In this document: piece by piece, positions 16,759-60,034 of the stretch | How positions within the stretch are numbered: the stretch's first letter is position 1 | Layout of the letters: each line of letters starts with the position of its first letter | Assembly (NCBI GenBank): GCA_025594325.1 | Contig: JANHCV010000007.1 | Location: forward strand, 1,116,001-1,180,000 | Direction of reading: 5' to 3' | Length of the DNA stretch: 64,000 bases | Source of the DNA: Blastocladiella emersonii ATCC 22665 | Taxonomy: Eukaryota > Fungi > Blastocladiomycota | Notes under the pieces: model-generated | What the model saw: only the letters and a program-made list of their open reading frames with translations | Databases searched by the model: none | What the model was told of the DNA's origin: nothing | Translations under genes and position numbers: made by a program

Positions 16759-18108
16759 CTACTCCTCGTCCGCGGTAAACAGCGCAAGCGGGAGCCCCGA
16801 CTTCTCGTCGCGACGCGTGTCGCGCTGAGACTCCCCGCTCAACGTGCGCCCGTGCCGCAGCTCGTCGAGCAAGGCGCGCGAGTCCTTGACAAACTGCTTG
16901 CCCAGAACGTCGTTGCCGCGGTCGCCGAGGGCGGCCATCATTTCCGTGTAGAGCGGAGTGAGCGGAGCGATCGTGCCCCGTCCGAGTCCAAGGAACGACG
17001 CGACGCCCGGGTTGCCCTACTTGCACGGGGGGAGTGAGTGACTGGGGTAACGAGCGAGAGCGGCGAGCAGAGGGGCCGCACCAGCGTGGCCATGGTCGCA
17101 ACGAGGATGGGCGCAAGGTGGTGGATCGTAACCAGCTTGGCCTCCGGGCCCTCGTCCCGGGCCGCGCGATCGTTGAGCCGGCCGAGGTACGCGTCGATGG
17201 CGGCAAACGTGTCCACTAGGTTCGTGAGGCCCATGTCAGTCAGTGATCGCGAGGCAGCAGGCATAGCTGTGCGCGTACCGTCGATCCAGTGCATACCCCG
17301 CTCGACCACTTGGACGAGGAGAGGATGAAGCGACGATGCACTCGTCCCATCATCATTCGCCGGCCTCAGCATCCAGTGACGGTTGAACTCGAGGCTGCGA
17401 ATGGCGCGAGCGGGATCGAGAGCGCGCAAGGTCGGCCGGATCGATGCGAAGCGTCTGTCCTTGAGGCACTTGAGCAGGGCCAAGCTGAGGCTGCCGCGAA
17501 GTCGAGTGCTCACCCGCACAAACTGCGTGTAATACTGAATGACGGGCGGGACGTGTCCGTCAATTGCACCGTAGCAGCAAGCACCCCCCGGGAAGTACCT
17601 TCTCCAGTGCCATAGGCTTCGTGCCCGAACCACACAGCTGGACGTAGTCCGCATAGCAGTGGCGGCGGACGATGTGGAGCCCCGCAAACGGCCCGTAAAC
17701 GAGAACGCTGACAAACAGCTGCACACGGAGCGTGATCGGCAAGGAGCGCAGCGCGCCGCCAAACCGGCGCCGTTTCGTGCCACGGCTAGAGTGTCAAAAT
17801 GGCATGTGAGGTGCGATGAAGCCTAAGAGCGCAGCTCAAAATCCGTACTCGGACGCACCAACATCCGCTTCATCGTCATCCTCGCCGGCGGGCGCCTCGA
17901 GCAAGTCATCCAGCTCCTCAATTCTATCCGTTTTGATCACGGGCAACGTTGCAGACGGTTTGACGGCGCCAGCTCGGCCCGCTTTCGGACGCAGGCGGCG
18001 CCGCGAGACAGTGTTGGCGCTAAGCTCCATTGCCGGCGGCGACCCGCCCGCCGAGCGCTCACGAAGGCGCTTGCTGCGACGTAGCGGCGTAATTGCATCA
18101 GCTTTCAT
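16759..18108 (-). CDS. Unknown 5-exon family, copy A (apparently intact, 364 aa)
   Basis: Hand-spliced exons 18108-17849, 17785-17599, 17534-17279, 17215-17082, 17016-16759; introns of 63, 64, 63 and 65 nt, all GT..AG; open frame throughout. Motifs PLRRSKRLRE, VYGPF..HCYADY, SLEFNRHWM, LHPLL, AIDAYLGRLN, LGKQFVKDSRALLD, SGLPLALF. Confidence 0.8.
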
Positions 18109-18225
18109 GGCTATTTTGTTTGATTGGCGTTCCACCAGACAGGGCAAGGGCGGTGACGGCGGTGACGGCGGTCGGGCGGTCGGGCGGCCTTACGACGATC
18201 GACATGTTTCAGCCTTCGCACGTGC

Positions 18226-18238
18226 GTGGCGCAACGCG
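18226..18238 (-). promoter_or_regulatory. Conserved 13-bp upstream element of family copy A
   Basis: GTGGCGCAACGCG on + (CGCGTTGCGCCAC on the coding strand), 118 bp from the ATG; identical upstream of copies C, D, F and G. Confidence 0.6.
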
Positions 18239-18321
18239 TCCGGGGAGGGAGGTCGACGAAGATGCGGGACTCGGAGCAGCTCAAAGTGATAGTGAACGAT
18301 GATGTATCGATGTACGCAGAT

Positions 18322-19136
18322 TCACTTGTCTGTGGCGAGAAACATGGCCATGGGCAGCCCCGACAGCTCCTCGCGCGGCACGTCGCCGGCTGGGCGGTCA
18401 AACCCGTCGCCCGCGTGAAGTTGGTCGCTGTGCAGGTTCTTCACGAGCTCGCGCGCGTCCTTGACAAACCGGTTGCCGAGGACACTGCCCGAGCTGGCGT
18501 CCTGCAGCGCCGCCAGCGCCTCGTTGTACAGAACCTGGACCTGGAGCGGCGGAAGCCGGCGCGGGTCGAACCCGAGGTGCGTGATGATAGCGAGGCTCGC
18601 CTGCGATTGCGTCGCGGTTTATGTGTTAGTTCTCGGTCACTTCGACGAGTGAACAGCGCCGCGCGAGTCGTACAAACGTCGCCACGGTGATGACGAGGAC
18701 CGGCGCGAACTAGCCGAGCGTGACGGCCGTGTGGCCTTCGCCTTCGGCTTGGGCGAGGCGCGCGTTGAGACGCTCAAGGTAGTCCTCGATGGCCACGACC
18801 ATGTCCGCTGGAAATACATGAGATTTGCGTCGGAAACGCGTCAGTGGCCGGCGCTCCAGCGGTGGGAAAGAAACCCCACGAACTGTCGTGCTTCTTCATG
18901 ACGCGACGAAGGATCTCGCTGAGAAGCGGGTGGATGATGGACGACAACGCCGCCGACTGCGGCGATCCAAGCATCCAGTGTCGGTGGAAGTTCAAGGTCC
19001 GCAGGTCGCTCGCCGAGTTGACGGCAGGCAACGTTGGTCGGAGCGCCGCCGCCTTCTTGTCGCGAAGCAGCGCGGTCATGGCGCTGTTCACGCGGGTGCG
19101 CTCGCGCTGGACCGCGTCCGTGTACATTTTGCGGTC
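18322..19136 (-). pseudogene. Unknown family, copy B (exons 3-5 only, premature stop)
   Basis: Homologous exons 3-5 with splice sites at the same positions (LNFHRHWM, AIEDYLERLN, LGNRFVKDAR). In-frame TAG at 18712-18710 where other copies have His/Gln. Exons 1-2 not found. Confidence 0.8.
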
Positions 19137-19275
19137 CTTGCGAAAGGCGAGCGAGTGAGTTAGCGATCATATGAGCCCTAAACTGCGCGCATCTGGTCAA
19201 AGTCGACCGCGACCTCGTTGGACTCGTTCATAAGTTGGACATAATCGGCAAAGCTGTATTCGTACTGAACCAGCG

Positions 19276-20755
19276 CTACTCATCGTCCTCGCCCATGGCG
19301 AACGCCGCAAGCGGGAGTCCCGTCCGCGCCTCGCGGGGCGCGTCGTTCTGTCGCGCGTGATTTTCAGTCGCCGTGAATGGACTCAGAGGAAGCGTGTGCA
19401 CGAGGGCGCGCGCATCCTTCACAAACCGCCGGCCGAGAACGCTGCCGCCGTTGCTTGTGTCCTGGAGCGCCGCCAGGGCCTCATTGTATAGCTCTTGCAG
19501 CGGCGGGAGCTCCAAGTGACTGAGGCCGAGGTGCGACACGACGCCAACGTTGGTCCACGCGTCAAAGCAAGGGTGAGTTCCAGAGCGTTGGAAGAAGCAG
19601 TGTAAATGGCCGCACCAGCGTCGCCAACGAAATGACGATCAGCGGCGCGAGCTGGTGAAGCGTGACGACCACGCGGTCGCCGTCGTCCTTGGCCTGAGCA
19701 GCAGTGCGTGCGTTGAGCCGCTCGATGTATGCCTCGATGGCGGTGATACTGTCGCCTAGACGCGGCGGACGAGCGGAATATGGGGGTCGTGTCAGTGATC
19801 GCGCAAGGGGACAATCGAGTAGGTAGCAAATACCCTCGGGCCAATGTATGCCGCGCTGAACTGCGAGAACAAGCAGCGGGTGGAGGGTGGACGCCTCGGC
19901 ACTGAGCGGTGACGAGTTGATCATCCAGTGGCGATTGAACTCGAGACTCCGAACATCGCTGGCCGAGGCAACAGGAGGTAGCGCTGGACAAACTGAGTGG
20001 TTCCGCTTGGCTCCAAAGAATCTTTTCGCCACTAACGAAAGCAGGGTACGGAGTCGGTGGATGACAGTCGCGAGGTGCTTGCGGTACTATTCCACGCAGT
20101 GCGTGACACGCACGCATGCCGTCACATGCCAAGTCAGTACACATCTGGCTTGCGCAGGCTCGCGCAAGCAAACGTGATCGTACCTCATCAAAGCTCAGCA
20201 GCGCCTCGGACACGCCCATCAGTTGGAGGTAGTCCGCGTAGCAGTGCTCGCGTACGATTTCGAGATTCGAAAAAGGGCCGTAGATAAGCACACTTGCACG
20301 AAGCTGGACTATGAGGTCGTTTGGGATGTCGCGCAGGTTCCGCCGGCAACGGCGTTTCGCTGGACTGTGACAGCGTGTGCGCGCCGTGAGTATCGAGGAC
20401 AGTCAAGGAGTAGCGGGGTCGCTGAAGCAAGTCTGGGCGAGAGCACGGACCCTCGAGTATCACCCTCGCCGTCGACATCGTCCTCAGACTCCTCATCGTC
20501 GTGGCTCGCCTCGCCATCGCCTGAGACATGACCGTCGCTGCTCGAGACGTCGGAAAGCTCATTGTCACTGTCGCTCAAGCCCCCGCTCCACCCCGTGGCA
20601 ACCGTGGCCAACGGCTCGCCCGGTCCGTCTGTCCCAGGGCGCAGACGTGCCCGTGCAGCGGGCACGGCGGTCGACTCCACTTCTGTCGGCTGGGCTGCGT
20701 CGCACTGGCGCAGGCGCTTGCTGCGGCGGACTGACGTAGTTGCATCAGGTTCCAT
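19276..20755 (-). CDS. Unknown family, copy C (open exons, last splice acceptor mutated AG to GG)
   Basis: MEPDATTSVRRSKRLRQ start, acidic tract, IYGPF..HCYADY, SLEFNRHWM, AIEAYIERLN, LGRRFVKDAR. The intron-4 acceptor reads GG at 19556-19555. Confidence 0.7.
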
Positions 20756-20838
20756 GGTTTTATCGGTGCTCAGTTCGGCGCGGCGGTGTTCCGTTGAACG
20801 GGAGACGCGGCGATTTGCCGGGCAGGCAGTGCGAGCGG

Positions 20839-20851
20839 GTGGCGCAACGCG
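20839..20851 (-). promoter_or_regulatory. Conserved 13-bp upstream element of copy C
   Basis: GTGGCGCAACGCG on +, 84 bp from the ATG at 20755. Confidence 0.6.
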
Positions 20852-21121
20852 GTCGCTGAAGGGCGACTGAAGTCGCGCTCTCGCTCGCTGTCCCGAAAGG
20901 CCTGGATTGATTGCAAAGCACGCGCTCTAGTAGTTCGTCCGCGCCCAGCGTCAGCAGCAGCAGGGATAATACTCTGACAGCGTTGGGTTCGCGCATCGCC
21001 CGCTCTCCCCGCTCGATGCCGCCGCGGGACGCTACCTTGAAGTCGCACTCAAGTTGCGATGTCACAAAAGCGTAGCAAAAGGACTGCTTCAAGATTCGCG
21101 GTACAGAAAATGCGAGGAAAC

Positions 21122-22607
21122 CTACTCGTCTGCAACAGCGAGCAACGCGAGCGGGATGCCCGACTTGTTGTCGCGGGGCACGTCGACGAGAGGCTCGCGA
21201 CCGGCCATCATCGGGATCTGGTCGCGGGGCAGGTTGTCGATGAGGGTGCGCGCGTCCTTGAGAAAGTTCTTGCCAAGCACGCTGTTGGGGTCGTTGAGCG
21301 CTGCCAGTGCCTCGTTGTAAAACACCTGGACCGGCGGGATGCTGCTCCGAGGAAGCCCGAGATGCGAAGCGACGGCGACGTTCGCCTACGTAGCAAGAGT
21401 CAGTGCTCGCTGAACGCGCATTGGTGGCGACGCGCAACCGTACAAAGGTGGCGATGGTGATCACGATATGCGGCGCGATCTGTCGCAGCGTGATGGGCGT
21501 GTGCTCGCGGTCCTGCGTGCGGGCCATGCGGTCATTGAGACGCGCGAGAAAGGCTTCGATGGCCGAGATGCTACTCTCTAGATATCGAGCGGCGGACGGT
21601 TAGTTGGCTTCCACCCAGCGACGGACTTTCGAAGCGACAGCGGATATCACGCACCTTCGGGCCAGCGCATACCACGCTCAACGAGGTTGGCCAGGAACGG
21701 ATGGATCGTAGTACGCGCGCCGCCCGACGAGGGTTTGATCATCCAGTGGCGGTTGAATTCGAGACTGCGAACGTCGCCCGCCGAGTCGATTTGAGGAAAG
21801 CTAATTCGCGTCGAGCGCGCTCGCTCGCCTTGAAGGGCACGCTTCGTTTTGCCATGCATGTTGGAGCGGAAGCCGTGGACGACCAGCAAATATTGCCTGC
21901 GGTACTACATGGTGACGAGCGAGTGCGTCAACAATAATGAAGTTGTCGTGTTATTCGTCAGCGCGGGGGCGATCGAACCTCGTCAAAGCTCACAGCGGTT
22001 CGGTCTGCGCCCGCCAGCTCGAGGTAGTCGGGGTAGCAATGGTTGCGAATGACTTCGAGATCGGCAAACGGTCCGTAAACGCAGGCGCTCGCCCGAGCCT
22101 GCACCTTGAGTGCAATGGGGATCTGGTTTAGAGCTCTCGACGACCGCTGACCAGAGTTGGTAGAACTGCGGCGGACGCTAGGTTGCGTTTGGTTAGATAG
22201 AGCGCGGTTGGTCAATGACAAGGAAGGCGCGGGTCGGTCGACCGTTGCTGATGCAACACGAACCCATGTGCATCTTCGTCAGATTCCGCGCCCGAGCTTT
22301 CGTCCTCGCTCTCGCTCTCACTCTCAGAGGCCGACTCGTCGCTGCTCGGCAGGTCAGACAGGTCAGACAGGTCGGACAAGTCGGACAGCTCGTCCTCGCC
22401 CATGCCGCAGCCCTCTGCTCCGACCTTGTGCTGCGGAGCGGCCGTAGTGGGTTCAGCGTTCGGTTGATCCGTCCCAGCATGAAGACGAAGAACCAAGCGC
22501 GGCCGCGAACCGCCGGCGAGCGCGGACTCGAGTCGCGGCTGCTCGCCCGCCGGCCGCTCAAGAGGGCGCTCGCTGAGCCATCCTGGCGCTTTTGCATGAG
22601 GTTCCAT
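21122..22607 (-). CDS. Unknown family, copy D (apparently intact)
   Basis: MEPHAK start, LSDLSDLSDLSD plus acidic tract, four canonical introns at the same positions as copy A, VYGPF..HCYPDY, SLEFNRHWM, AIEAFLARLN, LGKNFLKDAR, SGIPLALL; no internal stop found after splicing. Confidence 0.75.
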
Positions 22608-22692
22608 GAGTTTTACGTCGTCGTGGGCGTGGGAGCGCTCCATGGCCTGGCGTGGGGACGGGTGGCGCTCGACCGGTTTCACGGTGCGTTGA

Positions 22693-22705
22693 GTGGCGCA
22701 ACGCG
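22693..22705 (-). promoter_or_regulatory. Conserved 13-bp upstream element of copy D
   Basis: GTGGCGCAACGCG on +, 86 bp from the ATG at 22607. Confidence 0.6.
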
Positions 22706-22860
22706 TTCCTGCGCCGTTACTCGGGCAGCGCCGAGCCCGCGCCTTGGCTTTGCGAACTTAGGCCAAGGGAAACGTGCCGCGTACTTGGTCCTTCGTTCGC
22801 CAGTACCAGTTCAGCTTGTTAGCTTAACTACGACGCATCAACCGCTACGCATCGACCACC

Positions 22861-45174: not shown

Positions 45175-45755
45175 GAATCGCTGCGACTGCTGCTGCTCCC
45201 GCTCCTGCTTCGGATAGTGGTGCGAGCGTGCGAACGATTGAACTGGAAAGGGGCAGGAAGCGGGACGCGGCTGGCTTTGTACACCGGTTCCAGCGCGGGA
45301 AGCTCACCCAAAAGTGAATTTTTACGAGGCTCCGTCGTGCGCAACGCGAGCTTGCTGCTGACGGCTAACGAGCTTCGCGTTCAAGGTCGTTGATCGCGGA
45401 ATGATGGCGCGCATTTCGACGGTTTCGCACGTTCATTCACTGCCCTTCATGTTGCAACAAGTTTTGGAGAGATTTATTTTTCAACAGCGACGAGTCGTGC
45501 GAAAAGTTTTGGGTGAAGGGAAGGGAAGGGAAGGGAAGTCGGATGAGGTGGTCGCGCGTCGCGGAGCCGCGTGCGGCGCGCGAGGCGCGATGGGAGATAA
45601 GATGGCTTGACCGAACCCCCGGAGCCCGGCCCGATCGAGCTGGGGATTCAGCTGGGGTTTGGAGCTCAGGTTCAAAGTTGCACGTCCTCTGCAAACGACA
45701 ATACAAACACAATGCTAGATCTATCATTTGTCATTTCATCAGCTACAAGTTCCCA

Positions 45756-47863
45756 TTAAGCCTTGGGGGGAACAGGCGGCGGCGCGAGAATCCGCGACTT
45801 GGTCCGGCGCAGACGCACAGACGACGTGCGCTGGACGGCAGCCACGGCTTTCTTGAGGTCAGCGAGCGACCGCTGCCGGAGCCGCGCGATACGCTCCTCG
45901 TCCTCCTTGGTCATAAGCGGCGGACACTGCTCGACCTCGGCTTCGGTCGCGCTCGTGTCCAGCTTGGGCGGGTCGCTGAGAACCTGGCCCCCGGACGCGC
46001 GCGCGTAGTTGGGCGTCCACTCGACCCCGTTCGTGCGCGCGAGCCCGGTCCAGCGCGGGCCCCACACCCGCGTCGCGTCGCGCGTGAGAAGGCGGCCATC
46101 GTCGAACAGACAAGTCTCGACGCGGAACGGCGGCCGAGAGCCGGGCGCGTCAGCGATTTCGGTCAAGAACGAGAACACGCGCTGATGCACGCGTCGCGTG
46201 TCGTTGTGGCCGATGAGAACGAGAGGGAAGCAGTGAGGTTGGTGAATGAACACGTCGTGAACGACGAACGAAGCGCGGCCTAGGTCCGAGAGCCGCGCGA
46301 GGTTCGCGGCAAAGTAGATGTTGTCGTCCAGGAGCTTTTCGTCTGTTCCCGTGCACAGGTACACGGGCGGCCACGGTGCCCGCGTGCTGCCGCGATCGCG
46401 GCACGGACTAATCATAGGATGCGTTGAGGCAATGCGCTTGGCTTCCTTGGCACCGAAATGGTCGCGACCGACGTAATAATCCCACGTCTCGACCGCATGG
46501 CGGCCGAGAACGGACTCGGCCGGCGTGACAAGGAGGTCAAACTGGTTTTCGATCGTACTCGGGGTCTGGAGCGGCAAGTCGGTCCACGGAGAGATGCAGA
46601 CGATGGCCGAGGGCAGTGGATGGCCTTGCTCGCGGAGGAAGATGGTTGTTGAGAGCGCAAGATTGGCGCCAGCAGAGTCGCCCATCAGCACGATGCGCGA
46701 GGCGGGAATCCGCTCGACATGCGTGAGATACAGGTAAGCCGATGCGATGTCGTGGAGGGCATCGGGAAAGAGGTGCTCGGGAGAAAGGCGATAAGCACTA
46801 GACGAACGAGACGGAGATGGAGGAGATGGAGCGCCTGAGACTCATATACCAATCAGGAAACGTACACGTTCAGGAAGCGCCGGCGAAACATGCTGGCATA
46901 ATGAGCGACGACGGGGGAATAGAAAGCCTTGCTGCCGAAAAGGAAAGCACCACCGTGGACGAACAGGACGACGCGGTCGCTATCAACCACGGGAGGAACG
47001 ACCCAGTCTGCGCGCACGATCCACGAGCACACGTCGGGCACGCGCGGATACGTGGTGAGAAGGTTGGACTCAAGCACCAAGCGCACCGATCCGTTCGTGT
47101 CAGCTGTGACAGTAGCCGGTGCGGGAGTATCGGACGGCGCGCGCAAATCGACTTGCCACGAGAACTCCGTGACAGCCGTGTCGCGGAACAAGAGCAGCTC
47201 GACCGGTCTCTTGCTTAGTTTGCTGAAAGCCGAGAAGATCTCGCGCATGTGCGCCATGTCCATGGCGCCAAAGGTCGAGCGAGACGCACGAATAATCACG
47301 TCGGTGACCAGGTTACGGTTCGGACGCTCGGGACCGGTGAAGAGCGACGTGATCATGGTGGGCAGATGAATGAGACCCACGAATAAAAGCAAGAGAGCCG
47401 AACTGAGAGCCGAGCGTGGCGAGTAGTCGTAGCCTTCGAGGCGCAGGGCGCGATGCACAGGGCCGTTGACGCGCGCCGGATCGAAGTATGCATCAGGATC
47501 AGAGTCGTTGTTGGGGCGCGTCCACGCGCCAGCGGCAGCCAGGTCAAGCGGTACCTCCTCGTCAGCGTAGAGCGTAGTGGCATCGTCGATTAGAGCCGTA
47601 GAATCGAAGGACGCGTCTTTGGCGACAGGTCGGCTCTCGAGCTCAAAAACGAGCTCGGGCCAGGACGAGTCGATTGCAAGCGGCTGCTTGGCGCCGTCCT
47701 CGTCCTCCAGTGCAAACTGGCCCAAAGAGCTGACGAAATTCAAGTCGTAGAGCGGCGGCTCGAATGACGGCGGGACAGCCGGACGTGGATCGTCAGACTG
47801 CGTCGGAGCAGCAGGCGCGACATGCTGCAGCGGCGCCGGCGCTCGTTCATGCTTCGAGTCCAT
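45756..47863 (-). CDS. Alpha/beta hydrolase, hormone-sensitive lipase (GDXG) family
   Basis: LFVHGGAFLFGS oxyanion motif, YRLSPEHLFPDALHD, LMGDSAGANLA nucleophile motif, ISPWTDL, QPHCF; one intron near 46857-46797; long acidic N-terminal extension. Confidence 0.9.
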
Positions 47864-48416
47864 GTTGTCGATTCGTTGCAGTGAGTGAGGGAGGCCACAG
47901 TTCATAAGAAGAGCTTTATTTGTCAAGATCCGAGCAGAGAAGAGCCGACCCTTCCGGGCGAGGTCTCGTCCAGCGGCGCGTGTGAAACGCGAGCAACTCG
48001 CGGCGCGGGCGTTGAAAACGGCGAGCAACCTTCCACTTTCACGACCTCGGGCTCACTTTTCACACAGCCACATGTTTTGGTCTTTTTGGAAACCGAGTTT
48101 ATGCGTCAGTTTGCGCCTGTCTGGCGGATTGCTGAACGCCGATCCATGGCCAGACGGGAGACGCAATATCGCAGTTAGCGCGAGCTCGGAAGGCAGACAG
48201 CCCCATCGAGTTCCAGCTTTCTATATGATGATGGCCTTTGCGGCTCACAATGAGGCGACGATGCGCTCGATTGAACGAGAGCAAGGTTGAAGAGGGGAGG
48301 GACGCGATGGTCATGGGCGCGTGACCACCACCACCAGCGGCCGGGACCAGCCAGCCGTCCAGCCTCAGTGCTGCTCGGCCACCCCCGCTGCCGACCAGCA
48401 ACTCTATGCAATCGCC

Positions 48417-49238
48417 ATGTCACACGACGCAAAGAACGAATCCGATGCAGCGCTGCTCGCGCGCCTCGCTCAGCTCAAGGGCGAGTCGGGCCCGGCGCCC
48501 GCTGCCGCTGACGACGCCGCGCTGGCGTCCCGGCTGCGAGCGCTGAGCTCGCCGACACAAGAAGAGCCCGCCGTGCTCCCTGCGCCGCCCGTCGACCCCA
48601 TCGACTCGCTCGTCGCCGACCTGCTCGACAGCTTTGACAACGAGGACGAGGAGCCCATCCCAGACGACGGCAGCAGCGAGTGGGCCGCGTACAGCGCCGT
48701 CTTCGGTCGTGCGCTCAACCACGCCCCCGCGCTCTCGTCGACGGTCCAGACGCTGCTTGATCGCATCGACCCTGCCGGGACGCTCGCCGTGGCGGAGGTT
48801 GGTGTTGACAGCGAGGCGGATGCACTTATCGAGCAAGTCTCCGAGTACGTCCGCCTTGGTGGCGGTGCCGACAGCGATGTCGACGAGTCCGCCGCCGAGG
48901 CCGAGTGGGAGCGGCGGCTCGCAGCGCTCAAACAGGCCGAGATCCACCCGTCGCATGTCGGCAGTGCTGGCGAGGGCAAGTCCGCGCCACGCCCGGATCG
49001 GGGGCCCGGTCCCGCGTCGAGCAGTCGACCCGCTGACGACTCGGACCACGACGACGAGCTGTGGTGCTGCATCTGCAACGACGACGCGACGCTGCAGTGT
49101 CACGGGTGTGACGGCGACCTGTACTGCGTGCAGTGCTTCCGCGAGGGGCACGACGGCGACACTGGTCTTGCGGTCCACGCACGCTCGTCCATTGCCGGGC
49201 TCCGTGCGGCCCTCGCAGCTGGTAAGCGAAAGGCATAG
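48417..49238 (+). CDS. ZFYVE19/ANCHR-like protein with C-terminal B-box-type zinc finger
   Basis: Repeated L.RL..L[KR] helices ([27 protein letters not shown]) and [30 protein letters not shown]. Confidence 0.75.
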
Positions 49239-49414
49239 ACGCCAAAATGTAACGCTTTTTTTCCCTGCACAACCTCCGTTCCCGCGAGCCAGGCCCGTTC
49301 GCGAAGTCGGAGGACTGGTCGGGGTGCCACCAGGCTGAGACGAGCGCAGAGTCGAGCGCTGCGGCGCCGCAAGGGACCACCCCTCCCACACGCGAGAGCC
49401 CAGCGCACGCAACC

Positions 49415-52400
49415 ATGAAATTAGTCAATGCAATCGTGTCCACGGCTGGGTCCGGTGGCCCGTCAGCTGCGATAGGCTCCCGCTCGCGGATCGCCCTCTA
49501 CGTGTCGGTCGCGCTGCTCGCGAGCCTGGGCGTCGGCGTTGCTGCGAGCCTCTACCGCTCTCGCTCCCATCGCAGATCGCTTCGCGTTGATCCCTCGGGC
49601 TTGTTCGGCGGCGCTCTCTCAAGTCCGTATTGCCCGAATTCGGCGTCGAGTGACTTCGCTTACGATCGGACGCCGTAGGCGAGGACCTTGCGTTTATCGT
49701 TCGCTCGTTCGTGAACTTTGCCCGCACTGCCGAGTTGAACGAGGATATCGTTCGGTACGGACTTGAAGCAACTTTGGCATGGCCCGTGCTGACGGTGATC
49801 GATGAATAGGGCAAACGCAATCTGCACGGAGTTGACTGCGAGTGGTACGATTGCGTGCCCTCTCTCGCTTCTCTCGATCCCCGCATGACGCCGTTGTCGT
49901 TGTAGTTGATGATCTGCGCGCCCTGCTCAACGCGCTTGGCCCGCCTGACGCTCAAACTCGTGCCGAGGCCGCCTGCCTGCTCAGCGGGTTGATCGAGAAG
50001 CGTACGCCACTGAATTGACCCGTTGCGAGCAATTCCGAGCTGACCTCGACCCTTGCCTAGCCGAGTACGCCGCCGCGCTCGCGAACTCGCTGCTCGAGCG
50101 TGTGCTCGCGGGCGTCCTGTCCGAGCCCAACGCCGCGATCAAAATGGTCTTCGTGGACATGCTTCCGATCCTCCTCCGTGTCGGTACGCTGTTACGGTTA
50201 CGCCGCAACTGAATCCAGTCCAGGAACTCACCGCACAACGGATTGGGTAGACTCCGAGGATACTCTGCTCGTCCGTGTTCTGGAGCGCAAAGACGTGCTC
50301 GCTGCGTTTGCGGACCTGTTCCTCCATCCCATCAAGGAGACGCCCGGACTCTCCCGTCGCGCGTGGAACTCGACGATGCACATTCTGCGCCGTGGTACGC
50401 TGCTCAAGCCCTTGCCCGCGACGCGAACGACCTTCGCTCACCGCGTTCATGTAGTTCCGACCGTTCAGCCGCTTCTCGACATCGGTCTGCTCACTCGGCT
50501 CTTCCTCGCCGTCGCCAACGTCAGCGGCGACGCGTCGTGGCGAGGCGACTACTGCACGATGCTCGAGCCTCTCCTGGCGCGCACCATCATCCCCCAACGG
50601 ACCACTTTGTTCGCCGAGTGGCGCGGCTCGAACCTGGATCCCGTCGCCGCCGTGATCGCCCTCTTCAACGAGGACGGTTCCCCCGCCGCAAGCACCGCCA
50701 TGTCGCTCCTCGCCTTCATTGCCAACGGGACCGCGTGGCGCGACGAGATCAACTCGCACGCCGCGTCGCTTGTCGATGGCATGCTGTCCGCGTCCAAGGC
50801 TGGCACCACGACCGGTTTTCCCCTCGCCCTCGCCACGATCATCGTGAACAGCGGTACGCACAGCTCGAGGCCAGGTCGTTGTCGAGACCTTGCTTGACAT
50901 GCGTCTGCTGTAGAGCGGGCGGCCGAGTACCTCATCCAGTCTGGGACGCTGCGACGGTTTCTCGACGACAACAAGTCGACGCTCAGCGAGTCCGAGAACT
51001 CCGAGATCATCCACACGCTCATGGTCATCCTGACTTCCTTCGAAATGGACTTTGGTACGCGTCCCCTTGACCCTCATCCCTCACACACTTCATCTCACTC
51101 AACCCTCGAAATTGGTAGCTGAGGCGGACGCAGAACTTCGTCGGACCTTCCTGATCGACTTTGCGTACCAGCACATCGGCGACACCGCGGCAAGCGTGCT
51201 GTTCCTCGTCCGCTTCGACCCGTCGCTCGACCGCATCGCGCGCGCATTCGCCAAGACGGTTGCCGAGTACGCGAGCTCCGACACCATCTCTGAGTGCCTC
51301 ACCGCCGAGTTCACCGTCATCAACGCGGCGTTCGCGCTGCTCCGCGTCTCGCCCGAGTCCGCCACCATCCTGCTCGACGACGGGAACCTGTGGCCGCTGC
51401 TTCGCCGGTTCGCGCTCCACCCGGGCATGCGCGAGCGCGAAGAGGTTTCGGGCCTCGTCGCGCTGCTCCTACGCGCGCGCCCCGACCTCGTCGACGACGC
51501 CGTCGCCACCTTCTACGGCCCGCTTCTCGTCCAGCTCAACGCCGCGCTCGCCGAGATCGTCCCGCCTGCGGTCGCCCTGATCCGCGAGTCCCGCAAACGC
51601 GGTGGCGAGTTCGACGAAGCGGCCGTCGCGCTGCTCAACGAGCGGATCGGGCACGTCGAGAAGAACGTGTTCGAGTTCCTGCGCAACCTCGACCCGGTTA
51701 CCGTCACCGCCATGTGGTCCACCTCGCCCGCCGCCCGCCAGGCGTTTGTCGACATCCTCGCGCTGTGCGAACGGTCCATGCTCGCCATCGTCGCCGACAA
51801 CGAGGGCAAGCTGTTCCCGATCATGCGGCTCGCGCGCCTGGTCGAGGAGATGGCCGCACAGCACGGCACGGGCACCTCGGGCGCGGCCAACGAGTTCATG
51901 GCCGACCTCGTCTTCTCGGGCAGCTCGGAGCTCATCCTTAACTTTCTGTACCTCCCGTTCTCGCTGCTCCGCACCTTCGTCGGGTACGACGAGCTGCGCG
52001 ACGCGGTTCTCGGCCAGCTGCCGCTCATGGCGTGCGCGTCGCTCCGGTTCGGGTACCAGGTCCTCGCGCGCGACTTTGCCGCCACCGCGCTGTACGCGCC
52101 GCACGGCCAGTGGCTCCAGCTCGAGCAACTCGCCATGCTCAACAACCGGAGCGCGCTCGTCAACTCGGACCCGGACTACGCCGCGGCCGACATCGTGTCG
52201 ACCGAGTTCCTGCGCCGCGCCATCATTCGCGACCCCGCCCTTGATCCCGTCCACTGGGCCAACGTCTCGGGCAACACGCCGACAGGGATCTGCGGCACGA
52301 CCGTGTTCAACTTCTCGCACACGGCCAACACGGCGCGCGCGTCGCACGGCGTGACGCGGACCGGCCGGTTTGCGTTCACGGTCGATGCGTCACTCGAGGG

Positions 52401-53697
52401 CATCCCAGTGATCGGGTGGACGTCGCACGCCGGCCCGCTGCGCGGCAACGACTACACGCTCGCGCCGGCCGCCCGCGACACGTGCGTCATGGACTTTGGT
52501 GCCGGCCGCGCCATGCACGCGGGCAAGGTGCGGTTCCTCAACAAACGGCTCGCCGAGTCGGGCCCGATCGTTGTGACGATCGACCTCGACCGCGGCGAAA
52601 TCGCGACTGCCGCCTACGGCCAGGCGCCGCAGGTCATTTTCCACGGCATCGACGCAGCAAAGACGTGGTACCCGGTCGTCGTCCAGCCGCCCAGCTCGTG
52701 CTCGATCGCCCGCTTCGACGCTGCGCCCGAGGGCTTCACGTCGATCACAGCGGCGGTCGCGCAAGGCGCCGCGGTCGCCGTCCGCCCTGATATCGAACCC
52801 ACTTCGCTTCCCACGGCGGTCCCGGCGTTCCGCTCGGCAGTCGCGACCACGGCCAAGCAAGGTCTGCTGCCTGACATCAACTTCTCGTCGTACTACGAGA
52901 GCACGCTCGTCGCCCCGCGCTCGCCGTGCACCGCTGTCGGCCTGCGCGCGCTCAACCACGCGCACTACCTCTGGGTAGCCGCGGGCAACGGCGTCGAGTT
53001 CACGGCGCAGTTCGTCCTCGGCGCGCACCCCAGCCTGCCGCCCAACGAGCGCGCGACCGCGCTCGAGGACTCGGTCGAGTGGCGCGAGTGGATCCCCGCA
53101 CTCGCCGACTTCATCGCGACGAGCCCGCCGCGCGCCAAATTGGACGAGTCGCAGCGCGTGGCGATGGTCGTGCGGTTTGCGGTCCGCGAGGGGTCCGTGG
53201 AGGCGGGCCGGCGCGAGTGGGACGTGTCGTGGTCCGAGCTCGGCTCCGATCCCGCAGCGCAGGACGTGGCGCTCTCGAGCGCGTTCCTCGTCTCCCGGTT
53301 CGCGCAGCCGCCGGCCAACGCGCCTCACCCCCACGAGCCCGTGCGGATGCAGCTCGGCGTTTCCATCGGGACCCCGCGCCTGTCGTCCGACGAGCGCGGG
53401 GACCCGGAGCTCGCGCTGTTCGCGTCCCTGCTTGTGTTCGGCGTGTCCAAGGGCCACGACAGCGCCATGTCGCCTGCCGACCTGTCGCCTATGATCCCGA
53501 TGCACGGCGGGTCTGGCAAGCCGGACGACGGGCTGCTGCTCCCAATCGTGATTGGTGCGCGCCACATCGAACTCGCGCTGCACGTCGGCGAGGGCGGGGA
53601 TGCGACCAAGGGGCCCATGGCGCGCGGGTGCCCGACGCTCGGTCGTGACGTGCTGAATGCCTGGGGTCTTATCAAAGACGGGGAGGAGAAGGAGTAG
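49415..53697 (+). CDS. Large membrane-anchored helical-repeat (ARM-like) plus SPRY-like protein
   Basis: N-terminal TM (IALYVSVALLASLGVGVAASLY); several short 5' exons with GT..AG introns; long final exon with helical repeats and a SPRY-like beta region (FAFTVD..PVIGW..GPIVVTIDLDRGEI..FHGID..WYPVV). Confidence 0.75.
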
Positions 53698-53943
53698 ATG
53701 TGATACATGCGGTTTTGGTTCGTTGTGGTTTGAACTCCGCCTCGAGAAGAGCGGTGTACATTGACCTTTGGCCGTGGCATTTGTGCACAAGACGCGTCGA
53801 TCAAGCAAGTGATGGCCGCGAACCTGATCCGTAAACCTCACGCCCAAGATCTCCCCTCACGCGCGCGCCGCTCAGTTGTATCTCGTGGCGAAGTATCACG
53901 AACATAACTGAACGTATAGCCCCATGCAGTTTCTCGTCTCCTA

Positions 53944-54456
53944 TCACATACCCTCGGCCTCCTCCGACTCGACCTCGTCCACGCGGTCCTTGAGCGACTT
54001 CATCGAGACCCACAACGTGTAGCCGTAGCAGAGCAGCATGAACGCGTAGCCCGTGTATGACGGCATGTAGAAGGAGGGCGCGACGTTGAACACGCACGCG
54101 ACGGGGAGCAGCACGTAGACCCATGGCATGGCCAGGAGCTGGACCACGGCGTACGCGCTGGCCAGGATCGTGACAAGTGCAGTCGCAGCGACGATCGGGA
54201 GAATGATGGACAGCTCGGACACCATCTCTTGAATCATCGCCGGGGCTGCCGCGGTGCTCGGTTTGTTCCAGAGGTTGTACGACGAGCGGATGAGCTCCGG
54301 GATGGCCGCCGTGCTGAGGCAAGCGACCAGAAACAGAGCAGAGACTGCAACACGGCGGCCATGGTTCCGCCGGGCTTGGACGGCAGCCTTGGTGGGATGG
54401 TGCGGTTCGTCGTCCTCGAAATCGCTGGGAACAGTCGTGCCCATCTTAGAATTCAT
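53944..54456 (-). CDS. Small multi-pass membrane protein, function unknown
   Basis: 170-aa ORF with about four hydrophobic segments and an acidic C-terminus. Confidence 0.65.
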   Translation of the reverse strand: MNSKMGTTVPSDFEDDEPHHPTKAAVQARRNHGRRVAVSALFLVACLSTAAIPELIRSSYNLWNKPSTAAAPAMIQEMVSELSIILPIVAATALVTILASAYAVVQLLAMPWVYVLLPVACVFNVAPSFYMPSYTGYAFMLLCYGYTLWVSMKSLKDRVDEVESEEAEGM

Positions 54457-55012
54457 GGTAATGAGAGAGCTATGAGCGGAGAGAGAGCGGATGAAGCGGT
54501 CGAGCAGCGCGTGTTTTGACCTTCGCGGCATCGCCACGCGAGCCACAAGCAAAAAGCTTAACCGCGAGCTGCAGCGGAGAGGCCTGATTTGGAATCCGCC
54601 ATGCGTCCTCAAACGTGCTGAAAACGTGTTCCCGGCACACGTTGGCGGCCCGGATTGATGCGAGGGGTGATCGCTGCCACAGCACGCGTTCAGAGCAGCA
54701 CGCTTTCAGATAAGCGGTTTTTTTTACAGGTCGGTCAAGGGAACTTTTCAATCTTCGTGTAGAAAAAGAAAACACAATAGAGGACCTGCGGGAAAAACGG
54801 CGTGGCCGCCGGAAAAAAAAAGGCGCGACCTGAAACACGCGGGGCAGGTCACGCGCCGTGACCGCCACGGTCGGTCGCCCACCGCGCTCCGCTCCCTCGA
54901 CCCTTTCTCTCCTCCGCACGTCGTGCTGCACGCAAAATACACCGCTCTAACTCGGTGAAACACAATGAATCAATAACAGAATTTCCATGCAGCACGTCGT
55001 CAGGCCGTGGCC

Positions 55013-55687
55013 ATGGCACTTGCCGTCGCGGTCGTCCTCGCGCTGCATCAGCTTGTGAGGCTTCTCATGACCCCACGCCCGCGTCCGCGAGGTCGGCAGC
55101 TGTGGCAAGCCGCACCGTTTGACTTCGATCAATTTGACGATGCTGATTGCTGGGCAAGTTCCGCTTCCAGCGCAACGACATCATCTACCTCGCGGATCGA
55201 CTCCTTCCTCGCTTCATCCAACTTGGCGATCGGCACGGTCCCGTCCCTCGCCTTGCTGCTCTTTGCGTTCTTCTTCGCCGCCTTTCTTACCCGTGCCGGC
55301 TGGGCGACCTCTGTACCAACTTCCCGTACGACGAAACGCGCCTTTCCCACATCGTCAACTACCTGCAACGATGCCGTGGTGCTACGACACTCGCATCTCT
55401 TGGATCGGCTCCAAGCTCTTCCGCGGAAACCCGACGGTCGTCACTACGTGCTGTCCAACTCGGCGTATCCTCAGTTTCCGACGCTTCGGACTCCGCCCCG
55501 TCGAGGGCTCACGCCCGAACTTGCAGCGTACAAGCGCGCGATGAGTTCGGCACGCTCAACGATCGAGTGGGGCTTTCGCTCGTACGACGGAACGCAGCGC
55601 GAGCGCCGCGGCCAGGGCGTCATGCGACCGGATCCGTGCCACGCGCTCGCCGACGCGTCGTTCCGCGCGCTGGGCGCTCTGAATTGA
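55013..55687 (+). mobile_element. Decayed PIF/Harbinger-type transposase (DDE_Tnp_4-like)
   Basis: FDFDQFDDADCW/KFRFQRNDIIYLA..LAALCVLLRRLSYPCRLGDL..RLSHIVN, then YVLSNSAYP..P..LTPELAAYKRAMSSARSTIEWGF. Frameshifted; the central catalytic Asp segments are missing. Confidence 0.75.
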
Positions 55688-55693
55688 TTTTCT

Positions 55694-56539
55694 TCATGGT
55701 CTCGGCATAGGTGAGCGCAGCACGTAGATCAGCGACCGCGGCCTGTAGCGACCAGATCTGGTTGCCACAGTAGTCGTGATGACGGGAAGATCGGCGGCCT
55801 TGCGTGCAGTCTCGTCCAACTCGCTCTCGCTGTTCTCATCAGCAGTGGCGGCCATGAGCTCAATCGAGGCCATGCGCATTGCTTGGCGAGAATCGTGCAC
55901 CGGTGCTTGAAGCTGCAGATTGTCTCGACCAACGCGGCAAGGGCCTCGTGCTCATGAGTCTCAACAACACCTCGGTCGCCTCCATGAGGCTGCGCCTGCC
56001 TATTCGGCCTGCCCTTCTGGCCCAAGGCGATTTGACGCAGACCGCGCTCAAGAACCTGGCTTGATGGGGGCAAGAATCGCGCAACCGCAAGGCACACAAC
56101 GATGGCAAACATTTTCATTGCAGCGCTTCACGGCGTTCTCAAGCCATGGTCAGCGTTTAGCCGTTTGATCGCGAGAGATCTGCGATTTCCAGGCATTCTG
56201 TTAGGAGACATCCATGTTTTATTGAAGGCAAAATGCCTGTCACAGCAGGAGCGCTCCGTCCAACCTGATCACCCACGTCTGACAGCTCGCGAAGTGAGGA
56301 AATTGCCAAGGAACCATCGAGAGGATCCGCGATCCAGCATCCGCACCCTATTGCCGCGACGCATAACTCGCAAGAACCGTAACCGTCTCATCGATCCCAG
56401 AATGTGCAGCGAGGGGGGAGCGCGATCCCCCAAACTCGTCGTGAGCGAGTACGGAGCGCGATCCGTGGCTCGCTGCACATCGAGCATGACAAGACGGTCC
56501 GTCACAGGACTGTGCGTGAGCCGTTGGTGGGATGCACAA
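55694..56539 (-). mobile_element. Possible remnant of the Harbinger second (accessory) ORF, convergent with the transposase
   Basis: Broken minus-strand frames including SPLAAHSGIDE and a charged helical C-terminal piece; orientation fits two-ORF Harbinger elements. TIRs not identified. Confidence 0.3.
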
Positions 56540-57307
56540 ACTTAGTGTCGCGCGAGAGCGGCGTTCGAGGCGGGTGCAGATGCGGAATCGCGGATCGGTC
56601 TCGTTGGTGTCAAAGGGTCTGAAGCGAAGGACAATGCTGCAATGGCATTGCTCGAGTTTGAGGAAAGTGAGGCCTTAAAGCAGTCGAGTCTGCCATCAAT
56701 TGAAAAGTGAAATGCGCAATGGTTGATGCGTGCGTGGTTGTTGAGCCACCCACAATCGAGTTACACAAGCGGCGGCGGATCAACCCGCCAGCGAGGACCT
56801 AAGTCGCCAGAACAGGTTAGCGAGATCATTACCTGTGAGCAGCTAAACAGAGTAAATACTCATTCACGAAGTACTTAAACCTCATCGAGAATCAACTTCC
56901 TCTTGCACACAATGGCGGGGTGCTGGGCGAGCAGTCCTGCCCCCCTCACACTGTTCCGTGCGCAGGCATGCGGCTATGTGCGCGAGCGCTGTCAAAAATC
57001 GAGAGCAACAGCAAGGCAATTCAACGAGTCGCCAACGGGATAAATTGCAGCGGCCCGCGTCGTGGTTCGACTTTGCGCGAAGTCAAGGCCGCTGGAACGC
57101 TGGAAGTTCAGGCGAGCAAAGCGAGCGCGCTCCGCTGGAAACCGGCCGGATGCGAGTCCCGGGGGTATTGCATAAGTTGCAGCAAGTTATTGTTCGACGG
57201 CGTGTAGCCAGCGTTTCATGGTAGTCTATCACGCAGCGGGGCGCGGGAGAGAGAGCAAGCGATGACCGAACACGGCGTTTTCTTCCCAGCGGGCAAGCCA
57301 CGCGACC

Positions 57308-57320
57308 CGCGTTGCGCCAC
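57308..57320 (+). promoter_or_regulatory. Conserved 13-bp upstream element of copy G
   Basis: CGCGTTGCGCCAC on +, 85 bp before the ATG at 57405; same orientation relative to the gene as in the minus-strand copies. Confidence 0.62.
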
Positions 57321-57404
57321 CAGCGTGAGCTGAAACCGATGGCGCGCTCGTCGCTTCGCAAGGGGTCCACTCCTGCTCAAAGAGCTTCCACGAATCGTGC
57401 TGCC

Positions 57405-58755
57405 ATGAAACTTGATGCAAAGAACCGGCCGGTCCGACGCAGCTCGCGCATCCGTGCGCGCAGGGCGGGGTCGGCAGCACCGCCGCTGCCCCGCCTGCGA
57501 CCTCGGATTGCCCGGTCGAAGCCCGCGGCTGCTCTCCCCAAAGCGGCGAAAACCAATGGACGCAAACGGAGACGCCGCACCGCCCCGGAATCCGATGACG
57601 ATGATGCCGATGCGACGGAGAGTGAGCGTGAGGATGAGGGCGAGAGCGATGCTGAGAACGGCGACAGTGGGACCCGTGGGTACGGTGCGCGGTGCACGCT
57701 CGACTACGTGGCCGCACGACTGACCTCGCGCGGCTACGGTAGACCTGCGAGGCGAAGCTGGCGGGGAATAATCATGGGAAGTCTATCGGCAGCGATCAAG
57801 GTGCAGGCCCGCGCGAGCATGTTCATCTACGGCCCGTTTGCGAGCCCCGATATCATTCAAAAGCACTGCTACTCGGACTACCTCAACGTGCTCGGCGCGG
57901 ACGAGTCGCCGATGTCCTTTGAAGAGGTGCGGGCCTCTGGTTCGTCTATGCTATGTATGTGGCGCTAACATGTCTGCTGCGTGACTAGTACCACAAGGTG
58001 TTTTTGGAGACGATCCACAAGTTTCGCGGCTCACTGGGTCGGGCTGTGACGAAGCTCCTTGGTGCTGACCGCCACGCCTCGATCCGGCCACAGCTTCCTG
58101 CGCTCAAGACCGTGAGCAAGATTCAACCAGCACTGGATGCTGAAACCTAAGGCTGCCGGTCGCGGTCGCTCGCGCGGACTGCACCCGTTTCTTGGCGAGA
58201 TTGTGCGGCGGGCGCTCGCCTGGCGCGACGGTACGATGACTCGTGTTGCATTCGAGCCGTTGGACACTAACCACCGCTCGGACCTTTGCTTCGCTTAGTC
58301 AACGCCGTCGCCGAAATCGAAGCTTACCTCGAGCGCGTCAACGCTCGCACAGCCGCGCGTGGCATCGAGTCCAAGTTGGTGACGCTTCACCAACTCGCGC
58401 CAGTCCTTGTCGCCACGGTCGCGACCTTCGTACGCCGTGTCCGGCTGCTCACCATCATGACTCTTCCCTCAATTTGCGTCACTACGTGTAGGCGAACATT
58501 GGCGTCGCCTCGCACCTCGGCCTCGACCGCCACTCGCTCCCGCCGCTGCAGCAGCTGTATAACGAGACCATCGCGTCGCTCAACGGCCCGAACGGGATGC
58601 TCGGCAAAATGTTCATCGAGGACTCGTGCGCGCTTCTCGACACGCTGCGCGGCGAACGCATGACGAACGCGGAAATGGTTGAGAGCACGCGCGACGTGCC
58701 TCGCGACGCGCACTCGGGGCTCCCCGCGGCCGTGTTCGCCAGACGCGACGAGTGA
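57405..58755 (+). pseudogene. Unknown family, copy G (frameshift in exon 3)
   Basis: MKLDAKNRPVRRSSRIRA start, acidic tract, four introns at conserved positions, IYGPF..HCYSDY, AEIEAYLERVN, ASHLGL..LPPLQQLY, SGLPAAVF. The frame shifts at 58121-58127, where RSLE is missing before FNQHWM. Confidence 0.82.
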
Positions 58756-59520: not shown

Positions 59521-60034
59521 ATTAAGCATACATGCACAGGGGGTTGGTGTGCTGGTACCGCGGTCAAAACGCAATCCAAGAGTCAACGAGCCACTTGCCA
59601 AGCGAGGAGAACGAGAGCCCGAGTCGTGAGAGATCTGTCTTGAGCAGAGAAGCGTAGACGATTCAAGACACCCTCGAGCGCCCTCGACCAACTCGAGCGA
59701 AGCGCGCAAAACCGCTAGGCACCAACGCGAATAAACACTCAGCTGTTCTACATCGGGGAGCCACAGACTCGAGCGATGCCGCCGTATTCATCAAGTTTGC
59801 ATAAAGTTACATGCGATTCTAACGAGTGTGCGACTCGGCAGAGTCGAGGTGCGGGGAGAGGAAGCGCTTTCAGGGCGGCGAGCGGGGGTGGGAGTCAGCG
59901 CGTCGCACCACGCGTCGCGCCACCACGTGCGCGACTCCGCTTCTCCAAACTACGCCGCGGCTCGCTGGTTCACTCAGAAACCATCAGGATGATGAGAAAC
60001 AAGGACAGGATATATGTACAGCATCAGACAAGGC

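Follow-up and report, generated by a model that had tools for sequence, protein, structure and literature searches.

Does an element shared by the promoters of a diverged gene family belong to that family, and what might read it? The question arises in a 64,000-nt stretch of the Blastocladiella emersonii ATCC 22665 genome (contig JANHCV010000007.1, positions 1,116,001 to 1,180,000 of the forward strand), referred to below as the window, where the 13-mer CGCGTTGCGCCAC precedes five copies of a gene family. A first-pass annotation made from the letters alone had proposed a selected cis-element co-regulating this family, and had likened it to cell-cycle sites. To our knowledge, almost nothing has been published on promoter grammar in the Blastocladiomycota, and a literature search returned nothing relevant on the 13-mer as a regulatory motif, or on promoter motifs or mapped transcript starts in Blastocladiella. 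We scanned the window for exact, one-mismatch and two-mismatch matches, and searched 32.65 Mb of the genome in 21 contigs (denoted C). The published assembly of this strain comprises 34.27 Mb in 21 contigs with 10,031 genes, and the species is an emerging optogenetic and phototaxis model (PMC9730499). We find that the 13-mer is a general gene-control signal, present genome-wide and not family-specific. Its sequence context suggests that it is probably an oriented, high-information promoter-proximal factor site that serves mostly lineage-specific genes. The scale of the element is thus corrected from one family to the genome, and the E2F or cell-cycle label is removed.

The 13-mer ahead of the family copies

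Using the exons of copy C as query, tblastn located seven family copies (A to G) in the window, with only 30-50% protein identity between paralogues:

18108 to 16762, minus strand: family copy A (tblastn, copy C exons)
19166 to 18325, minus strand: family copy B, 5'-truncated (tblastn, copy C exons)
20755 to 19279, minus strand: family copy C (tblastn, own exons as query)
22607 to 21125, minus strand: family copy D (tblastn, copy C exons)
34260 to 33482, minus strand: family copy E, 5'-truncated (tblastn, copy C exons)
35542 to 34861, minus strand: family copy F (tblastn, copy C exons)
57405 to 58752, plus strand: family copy G (tblastn, copy C exons)

No Pfam domain was detected in the family exons, which were searched singly and not as a spliced model. 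The truncated copies B and E lack both exon 1 and the motif. Exact 13-mers occur at seven sites in the window (18226(-), 20839(-), 22693(-), 35621(-), 57308(+), 39869(-) and 41755(-)), the first five of which lie ahead of copies A, C, D, F and G. With the family-type start codon taken as the first ATG-RAA-NYT-SAT-GCA (encoding M-[E/K]-x-[D/H]-A) after the motif on the same strand, the promoter features are:

18226..18238, minus strand: exact 13-mer, copy A promoter; ATG at 18108, gap 117 nt; A before it (full ACGCGT) and GCACGTG after it
18206..18211, minus strand: TGAAAC box of copy A, 14 nt past the motif
20839..20851, minus strand: exact 13-mer, copy C promoter; ATG at 20755, gap 83 nt; C before it; without TGAAAC
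22693..22705, minus strand: exact 13-mer, copy D promoter; ATG at 22607, gap 85 nt; A before it
22676..22681, minus strand: TGAAAC box of copy D, 11 nt past the motif
35621..35633, minus strand: exact 13-mer, copy F promoter; ATG at 35542, gap 78 nt; TCACTCTGA after it
57308..57320, plus strand: exact 13-mer, copy G promoter; ATG at 57405, gap 84 nt
57331..57336, plus strand: TGAAAC box of copy G, 10 nt past the motif

The match is thus 13/13 in all five promoters, as the first-pass annotation had it, and the distances given there (118, 84, 86, 79 and 85) are the same as our motif-to-ATG gaps of 117, 83, 85, 78 and 84 nt for copies A, C, D, F and G, the counting convention differing by one base. 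All five motifs lie on the coding strand; this includes copy G, where motif and gene are inverted together, again as had been described. The surrounding sequence was said to be diverged, and indeed the motif-anchored pairwise identity of the 60-nt flanks is 0.29 upstream and 0.31 downstream, near the ~0.26 expected from composition. Besides the exact sites, one-mismatch copies were found at 23761(-), 43855(-) and 59911(+), and 28 matches with up to two mismatches are present in the window as compared with 11 ± 3.5 in shuffles. The seven exact copies stand against ~1.7 expected from the genome-wide density, a local excess that is due to the gene family copies.

The link between motif and start was then measured across the whole genome, which contains 94 instances of the family-type start ATGRAANYTSATGCA and none (0) of its control. 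An exact 13-mer lies on the same strand at a gap of 78-117 nt in 20 of the 94. These are the five window copies and 15 further starts; two pairs are duplicates between C6 and C20, leaving 18 distinct cases, among which the spacer between motif and ATG differs in sequence. The gap is 82-101 nt in 15 of the 20. On C19 (790-1195 kb), where matches to one conserved family exon cluster (61 in the genome, clustered there and on C20 and C6), 12 of 17 family-type starts carry the motif at 78-117 nt and one more carries it at 127 nt. An invariant 13-mer held at a kept distance and on a kept strand, in paralogues at 30-50% protein identity, is a strong footprint of selection. On this comparative evidence, the 13-mer in the family promoters clearly appears to be a selected cis-element common to the family, and that part of the earlier proposal stands. 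The part that made the element the family's own does not, since the 20 family-type sites represent just 2.4% of 851 exact copies in the genome, which also lie before unrelated genes, in a long terminal repeat (LTR) and in a 190-bp repeat.

The 15-nt coding start ATGRAANYTSATGCA lies at 18094-18108, 20741-20755, 22593-22607, 35528-35542 and 57405-57419 of the window. It is found on almost all contigs, a far wider spread than that of the conserved family exon; either a larger superfamily shares the same N-terminus, or the start region is kept at the DNA level for another reason. Family exons, starts and motif sites of C6 780-794 kb and C20 772-793 kb are arranged in mirror order with identical sequences, which indicates what may be a large inverted segmental duplication or an unpurged haplotig.

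A sharp, abundant and probably two-part site

The 851 exact genomic copies of CGCGTTGCGCCAC (410 forward, 441 reverse) compare with 8 for the reversed-word control. All 39 one-mismatch variants pooled give 1535 copies (~39 each), against 507 (~13 each) for the control. The sub-word GTTGCGCCAC occurs 1151 times and is preceded by CGC in 74% of cases; similarly, CGCGTTGCGC occurs 1692 times and is followed by CAC in 50%, whereas a few percent would be expected by chance for either. By these counts the 13-mer is exceptionally sharp, and its bases act together as one unit. Tolerated substitutions fall mostly at positions 5-6, giving CGCG[T/C/A][T/C]GCGCCAC in a 264-kb sample of the genome. An A directly precedes 518 of the 851 copies (61%, compared with ~17-18% from composition) and completes the palindrome ACGCGT. 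Two further arrangements were seen on C1: a tandem of two exact copies with a one-base overlap (C1:3504502-3504526 (-)), and a divergent exact pair 259 bp apart (C1:1251687 (-) and C1:1251946 (+)) that resembles a bidirectional promoter in which each direction has its own copy.

A second element is placed at a fixed distance from the first. CANNTG begins two bases past the motif in 118 of 851 copies (14%), where ~3 (0.3%) would be expected. Most of these fixed-offset E-boxes read T/A-CACGTG, and looser TCAnnTGA-like forms stand behind many other copies; among the family copies in the window, only copy A has the strict E-box. We therefore read the full site as two-part, (A)CGCGTTGCGCCAC followed by a TCAYRTGA half that is mostly CACGTG, with a spacer of 8 bases after ACGCGT, which may be written ACGCGTTGCGCCAC-TCACGTGA. 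The palindromic nature of the partner boxes (ACGCGT, CACGTG) points to recognition of double-stranded DNA. Nine basic helix-loop-helix (bHLH) domains are encoded in the genome. The layout resembles bHLH composites such as yeast Pho4/Pho2 or Cbf1 with Met4/Met28, where an E-box stands at a rigid offset beside a second element. It differs from them in that the strict E-box accompanies only 14% of copies, and in that the non-E-box half is long and invariant.

The looser TGAAAC box reported downstream of the motif proved to be real, and is mainly a property of the family and of the 190-bp repeat, here termed R2. It is present in copies A, D and G as claimed, though at 14, 11 and 10 nt rather than at 8-12. 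Genome-wide, GAAAC lies 3-16 nt past the motif in 60 copies (~7 expected); 26 of these are R2 copies and ~17 belong to family promoters (on C19, C20 and C6), where the box reads (G)CTGAAAC.

Position relative to genes and what may read the site

Gene context was examined in the 264-kb sample, for which genes were called in unannotated sequence with a home-made codon log-likelihood model trained on 40 long open reading frames (ORFs). This model scores the window family poorly and is thus blind to atypical or orphan genes. The flank sample took 10 kb around the first listed C1 sites (20 loci, denoted L), which together with the window makes 29 exact sites. None of the 29 lies inside a confident coding sequence, and only one of 17 sampled one-mismatch sites does. 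Among 15 independent non-repeat C1 sites, six precede a gene in the sense orientation, five lie at the 3' end of a convergent gene and four have no confident gene nearby. For the six sense sites, the distance from motif start to ATG is 119 (L003), 154 (L010), 160 (L002), 372 (L001), 480 (L020) and 488 nt (L005). Pfam searches of five of these genes (all but L010) found no domain in four and a secreted subtilase in one. Relative to the ATG, strand and distance are constrained in the family-type starts and in these six genes; the sites at 3' ends are the exception. The plain distance to the first downstream ATG is no different between the motif orientation and the flipped one at this G+C content, and a codon-score map was used in its place.

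The 3'-end class comprises five C1 sites, which face the convergent genes of a leucine-rich repeat (LRR) protein, a 5'-nucleotidase, a PTR2 transporter, the L020 orphan and a major facilitator superfamily (MFS) transporter, with the stop codon 109, 138, 144, 169 or 500 nt from the motif start. Three window sites (59911, 39869 and 23761) likewise face convergent gene 3' ends. At 39869(-), an exact copy described with the repeats below, the stop codon of a NatB-subunit gene is 241 nt off. The two others are one-mismatch copies:

59911..59923, plus strand: one-mismatch copy CGCGTCGCGCCAC, then CACGTG; faces the 3' end of an acetyl-CoA synthetase gene, stop 124 nt from the motif start
23761..23773, minus strand: one-mismatch copy CGCGCTGCGCCAC, then TCACGTG; in an apparent tail-to-tail spacer by ORF coordinates, between a plus-strand ORF ending at 23571, which the motif faces, and minus-strand ORFs ending at 24137

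On the far side of the 3'-end sites the G+C content is lower and no confident ORF is present. The L020 orphan gene (two ORFs of 336 and 134 aa) has exact inward-pointing copies at both ends, 480 nt before the ATG (L020:5001-5013 (+)) and 169 nt after the stop (L020:7043-7055 (-)). The sequences that flank one copy are unrelated to those around the other, so that the two are not inverted repeats of a transposon.

We favour the promoter-proximal factor site, drawing on the abundance and sharpness of the motif, its non-coding location, its orientation and spacing to the ATG, its conservation across diverged paralogues, the coupled E-box and its presence in repeats. One or more sequence-specific DNA-binding proteins would read (A)CGCGTTGCGCCAC in an orientation-dependent manner, with the site lying in nucleosome-free DNA just outside genes. 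In the commonest layout it would stand on the coding strand, 5' of the transcription start and ~80-160 nt (and up to ~490 nt) 5' of the ATG, where it would act positively and help transcription of the downstream gene. A bHLH partner is suggested by the adjacent E-box half (TCAYRTGA), which often follows with a constant offset of one base. The window family would be one client of this common switch, with its own TGAAAC box 10-14 nt further on, and the copies of the site in an LTR retrotransposon and in the 190-bp repeat would presumably let these elements make use of the host factor. LTR promoters normally lie in the U3 region, and the motif, at nt ~19-31 of the LTR, falls there. Among known systems, TATA-replacing boxes (S. 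pombe HomolD CAGTCACA, Trichomonas M3/M5 and the Phytophthora initiator with flanking promoter region, INR-FPR) are lineage-specific core or proximal promoter elements that are likewise genome-wide, oriented, position-constrained and shared by many unrelated genes, and R2 carries the HomolD word CAGTCACA right after the motif. The 13-mer is longer and sharper than these boxes, and a third of the sampled sites are at 3' ends.

Were this correct, the motif could be used to delimit a large regulon made up of transposons and lineage-specific genes, and could serve as a part for expression constructs; its ~850 near-invariant, oriented copies of 13-14 bases are in any case a handle for finding the reader protein. 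Several points weigh against it. The five C1 and three window sites at convergent 3' ends are places where no mRNA promoter is expected, and under a promoter model they must be promoters of antisense or non-coding transcripts, which is the simplest account of them. No confident gene lies close to four of the sampled sites. An ordinary transcription-factor site would not usually be near-invariant over 13 positions, and the combination of such sharpness with a 3'-end location on conserved genes is atypical of sites of that kind. The positional analysis draws on the 264-kb sample and the home-made codon model, and the place of the motif upstream of the transcription start is one that we infer.

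The 3'-end class could also be explained by a different function, a polar gene-boundary element in which a bound protein stops RNA polymerase II arriving from the motif's 3' side, in the manner of a Reb1 or TTF-I roadblock. Upstream of promoters it would block divergent transcription, and past stop codons it would block convergent read-through, so that the motif would mark gene boundaries beyond promoters, as a barrier ~100 nt before starts and ~110-240 nt past convergent stops. The gene body is 3' of the motif in the 5' and 3' classes alike, and comparably far from it: most ATGs of the 5' class are 91-160 nt from the start of the motif, and of the seven distances measured to a convergent stop, five are 109, 124, 138, 144 and 169 nt and the other two 241 and 500 nt. 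The genes with 3' sites are real and conserved (5'-nucleotidase, PTR2, LRR, MFS, acetyl-CoA synthetase and NatB subunit), the L020 gene has inward-facing copies at both of its ends, and 3' sites that point inward are more frequent than those that point outward (about 5-8 to 1-2). The site at L014 occurs only once in the genome and is hence no repeat relic. Like the sites of Reb1, Abf1 and Rap1 and the Sal box of TTF-I, the 13-mer is polar and is found both just upstream of promoters and just past genes. It has no sequence similarity to any of them, and while both TTF-I sites have one orientation relative to transcription, the 13-mer follows a different orientation rule. The sample is small, and the classes were set post hoc; some 5' sites are 370-490 nt from the ATG, and the fixed-offset E-box and the LTR location suit an activator site better. 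We consider a boundary function unlikely on present evidence, though worth keeping in view. A milder option is that the 3' copies could be promoters of coordinated antisense RNAs against conserved metabolic and transport genes. If either the boundary or the antisense reading were true, one near-invariant 13-14-mer in ~850 copies would organise the borders of transcription units in an early-diverging fungus.

The motif might instead act after transcription, as an RNA element in the 5' untranslated region (UTR), for example in translational control or small-RNA pairing on stored zoospore mRNAs. A strict sense orientation and a near-constant spacing from the ATG (78-117 nt among the family copies) would suit such a role, as would the near-perfect invariance of 13 nt, which base pairing would predict; the exact complement could be present in the convergent mRNA at the 3'-end sites. 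We regard it as improbable. The coupled boxes ACGCGT and CACGTG are palindromes typical of readers of double-stranded DNA, the motif sits at the extreme 5' edge of the LTR, and ATGs (in-frame or upstream) occur between motif and family ATG in copies A, D and G, which is awkward for a 5' UTR.

We are equally doubtful of the cell-cycle interpretation, a G1/S element of the MluI cell-cycle box (MCB) or E2F type, read by MBF/SBF and/or E2F and co-regulating the window family. There are points of resemblance: CGCGT is fixed, the full MCB hexamer ACGCGT is formed in 61% of copies, the sites are near promoters, and two KilA-N/APSES domains (PF04383, above the curated cut-off; C15:1363808 and C1:254203) are encoded in the genome. 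The remaining 39% of copies, among them three of the five family promoters, have an incomplete hexamer (the completing A is present in copies A and D), and the 13-mer itself holds only five of six MCB bases. The eight invariant bases that follow CGCGT, TGCGCCAC, are unexplained by MBF. MCBs are short, degenerate and largely orientation-independent. The similarity to E2F sites is confined to a GC-rich core and to TGGCGC on the bottom strand. Neither strand of the 13-mer matches the E2F (TTTSSCGC/GCGSSAAA), SBF (CGCGAA) or Swi4 cell-cycle box (SCB; CRCGAAA) consensus (PMC4862756), nor the relaxed E2F form TTSSCGC. A search for E2F_TDP gave no PF02319 match in a setting where control genomes were silent too, meaning that the positive control did not work, while the same profile method found the nine bHLH domains. 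It had also been held that this lineage retains both E2F and SBF. This is doubtful, as Amses et al. 2022 reported that Blastocladiomycota except Paraphysoderma lack components of the E2F/SBF hybrid network (PMC9457484). Finally, the client genes sampled downstream are mostly orphans, a secreted protease and transposons, and include no replication or cell-cycle genes. An E2F/SBF or cell-cycle identity of the 13-mer is therefore unsupported.

Copies carried by repeats

Two repeats account for part of the motif's distribution. R1, found at six of the 29 sampled sites including a diverged copy at 39869 of the window, is ~375 bp long with sharp ends, short imperfect inverted termini and ~33 genome copies. 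It begins AGTTCAAG and ends CTTCAACT, with the motif at nt ~19-31, and several of its copies form same-strand pairs 7.3-8 kb apart, as for retrotransposon LTRs. R2 (two of the 29, including 41755 of the window) is a dispersed cassette of ~190 bp with ~32 copies in two subtypes, AGCAGTCAC and AGCGATCAC, in which CACGTG, ACGCGT and CAGTCACA boxes densely surround the motif. The window features that belong here are:

39869..39881, minus strand: exact 13-mer in a diverged R1-like LTR start, R1 similarity over ~110 nt; faces the 3' end of the NatB-subunit gene (ORF end 39640)
41629..41820, minus strand: R2 copy with exact 13-mer at 41755-41767 and several CACGTG and ACGCGT boxes
43855..43867, minus strand: one-mismatch copy CGCGTTGCGCCGC within a dispersed repeat; 43733-45611 matches C1 DNA at 92% identity

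The first-pass annotation had allowed that the motif might be part of a longer repeat. This holds for 39869 (R1-like) and 41755 (R2), and does not hold for the five family copies or for ~20 of the 29 sampled exact sites, whose flanks are unique. It bears on the idea that the 13-mer is a passive relic without regulatory role, left as a terminus or footprint by a mobile element that spread through the genome. R1 and R2 together hold ~8% of the 851 copies and two of the seven in the window, and exact identity could suggest a recent spread. Set against this are the many unique flanks, including the one site confirmed to be single-copy genome-wide (L014), the exclusion of copies from coding sequence and the E-box coupling, which is also seen in unique contexts. 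The old family paralogues have randomised flanks and yet an intact motif at a kept distance and strand, by which a relic origin appears largely refuted for the family copies; for the motif as a whole we give it very little credence. The parallel with LTR U3 regions that carry host factor sites, which rests on the R1 pairs and the place of the motif within them, covers only ~4% of copies and accounts for carriage by the transposon, not for the identity of the motif. An origin from a tRNA or short interspersed element A-box was rejected: tRNA fragments hold GTGGCGCAA, but the window has no tRNA genes and the flanks are unrelated.

Several observations concern the repeats themselves. One R1 pair, L006:4980-5360 and L007:4983-5360 (C1:356071-363790), implies an LTR retrotransposon of ~7.7 kb, and a window segment of about 1.9 kb (43733-45709) is 92% identical to the DNA just upstream of an R1 LTR at C1:~354-356 kb (L006). 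The diverged LTR-like fragment at 39770-39900 of the window adjoins the 3' end of the NatB-subunit gene. For R2, exemplified by window 41629-41820 and L017:4863-5054, a solo LTR, a miniature inverted-repeat transposable element (MITE) and a mobile promoter cassette are candidates. The subtilase gene (Peptidase_S8 + Inhibitor_I9), with its motif 488 nt before the ATG, is held in a 5.3-kb inverted duplication of 99.98% identity between L005 and L008 (C1:328405-333722 and C1:376768-382085).

Base composition also varies along the window. The part that contains the family and the repeats (16000-60000) has 58-68% G+C, as compared with 69-72% in its flanks, and other motif-rich, ORF-poor stretches of C1 (L004, L019 and upstream of L015) are likewise lower in G+C. 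This fits an accessory compartment of the genome in which the motif is common.

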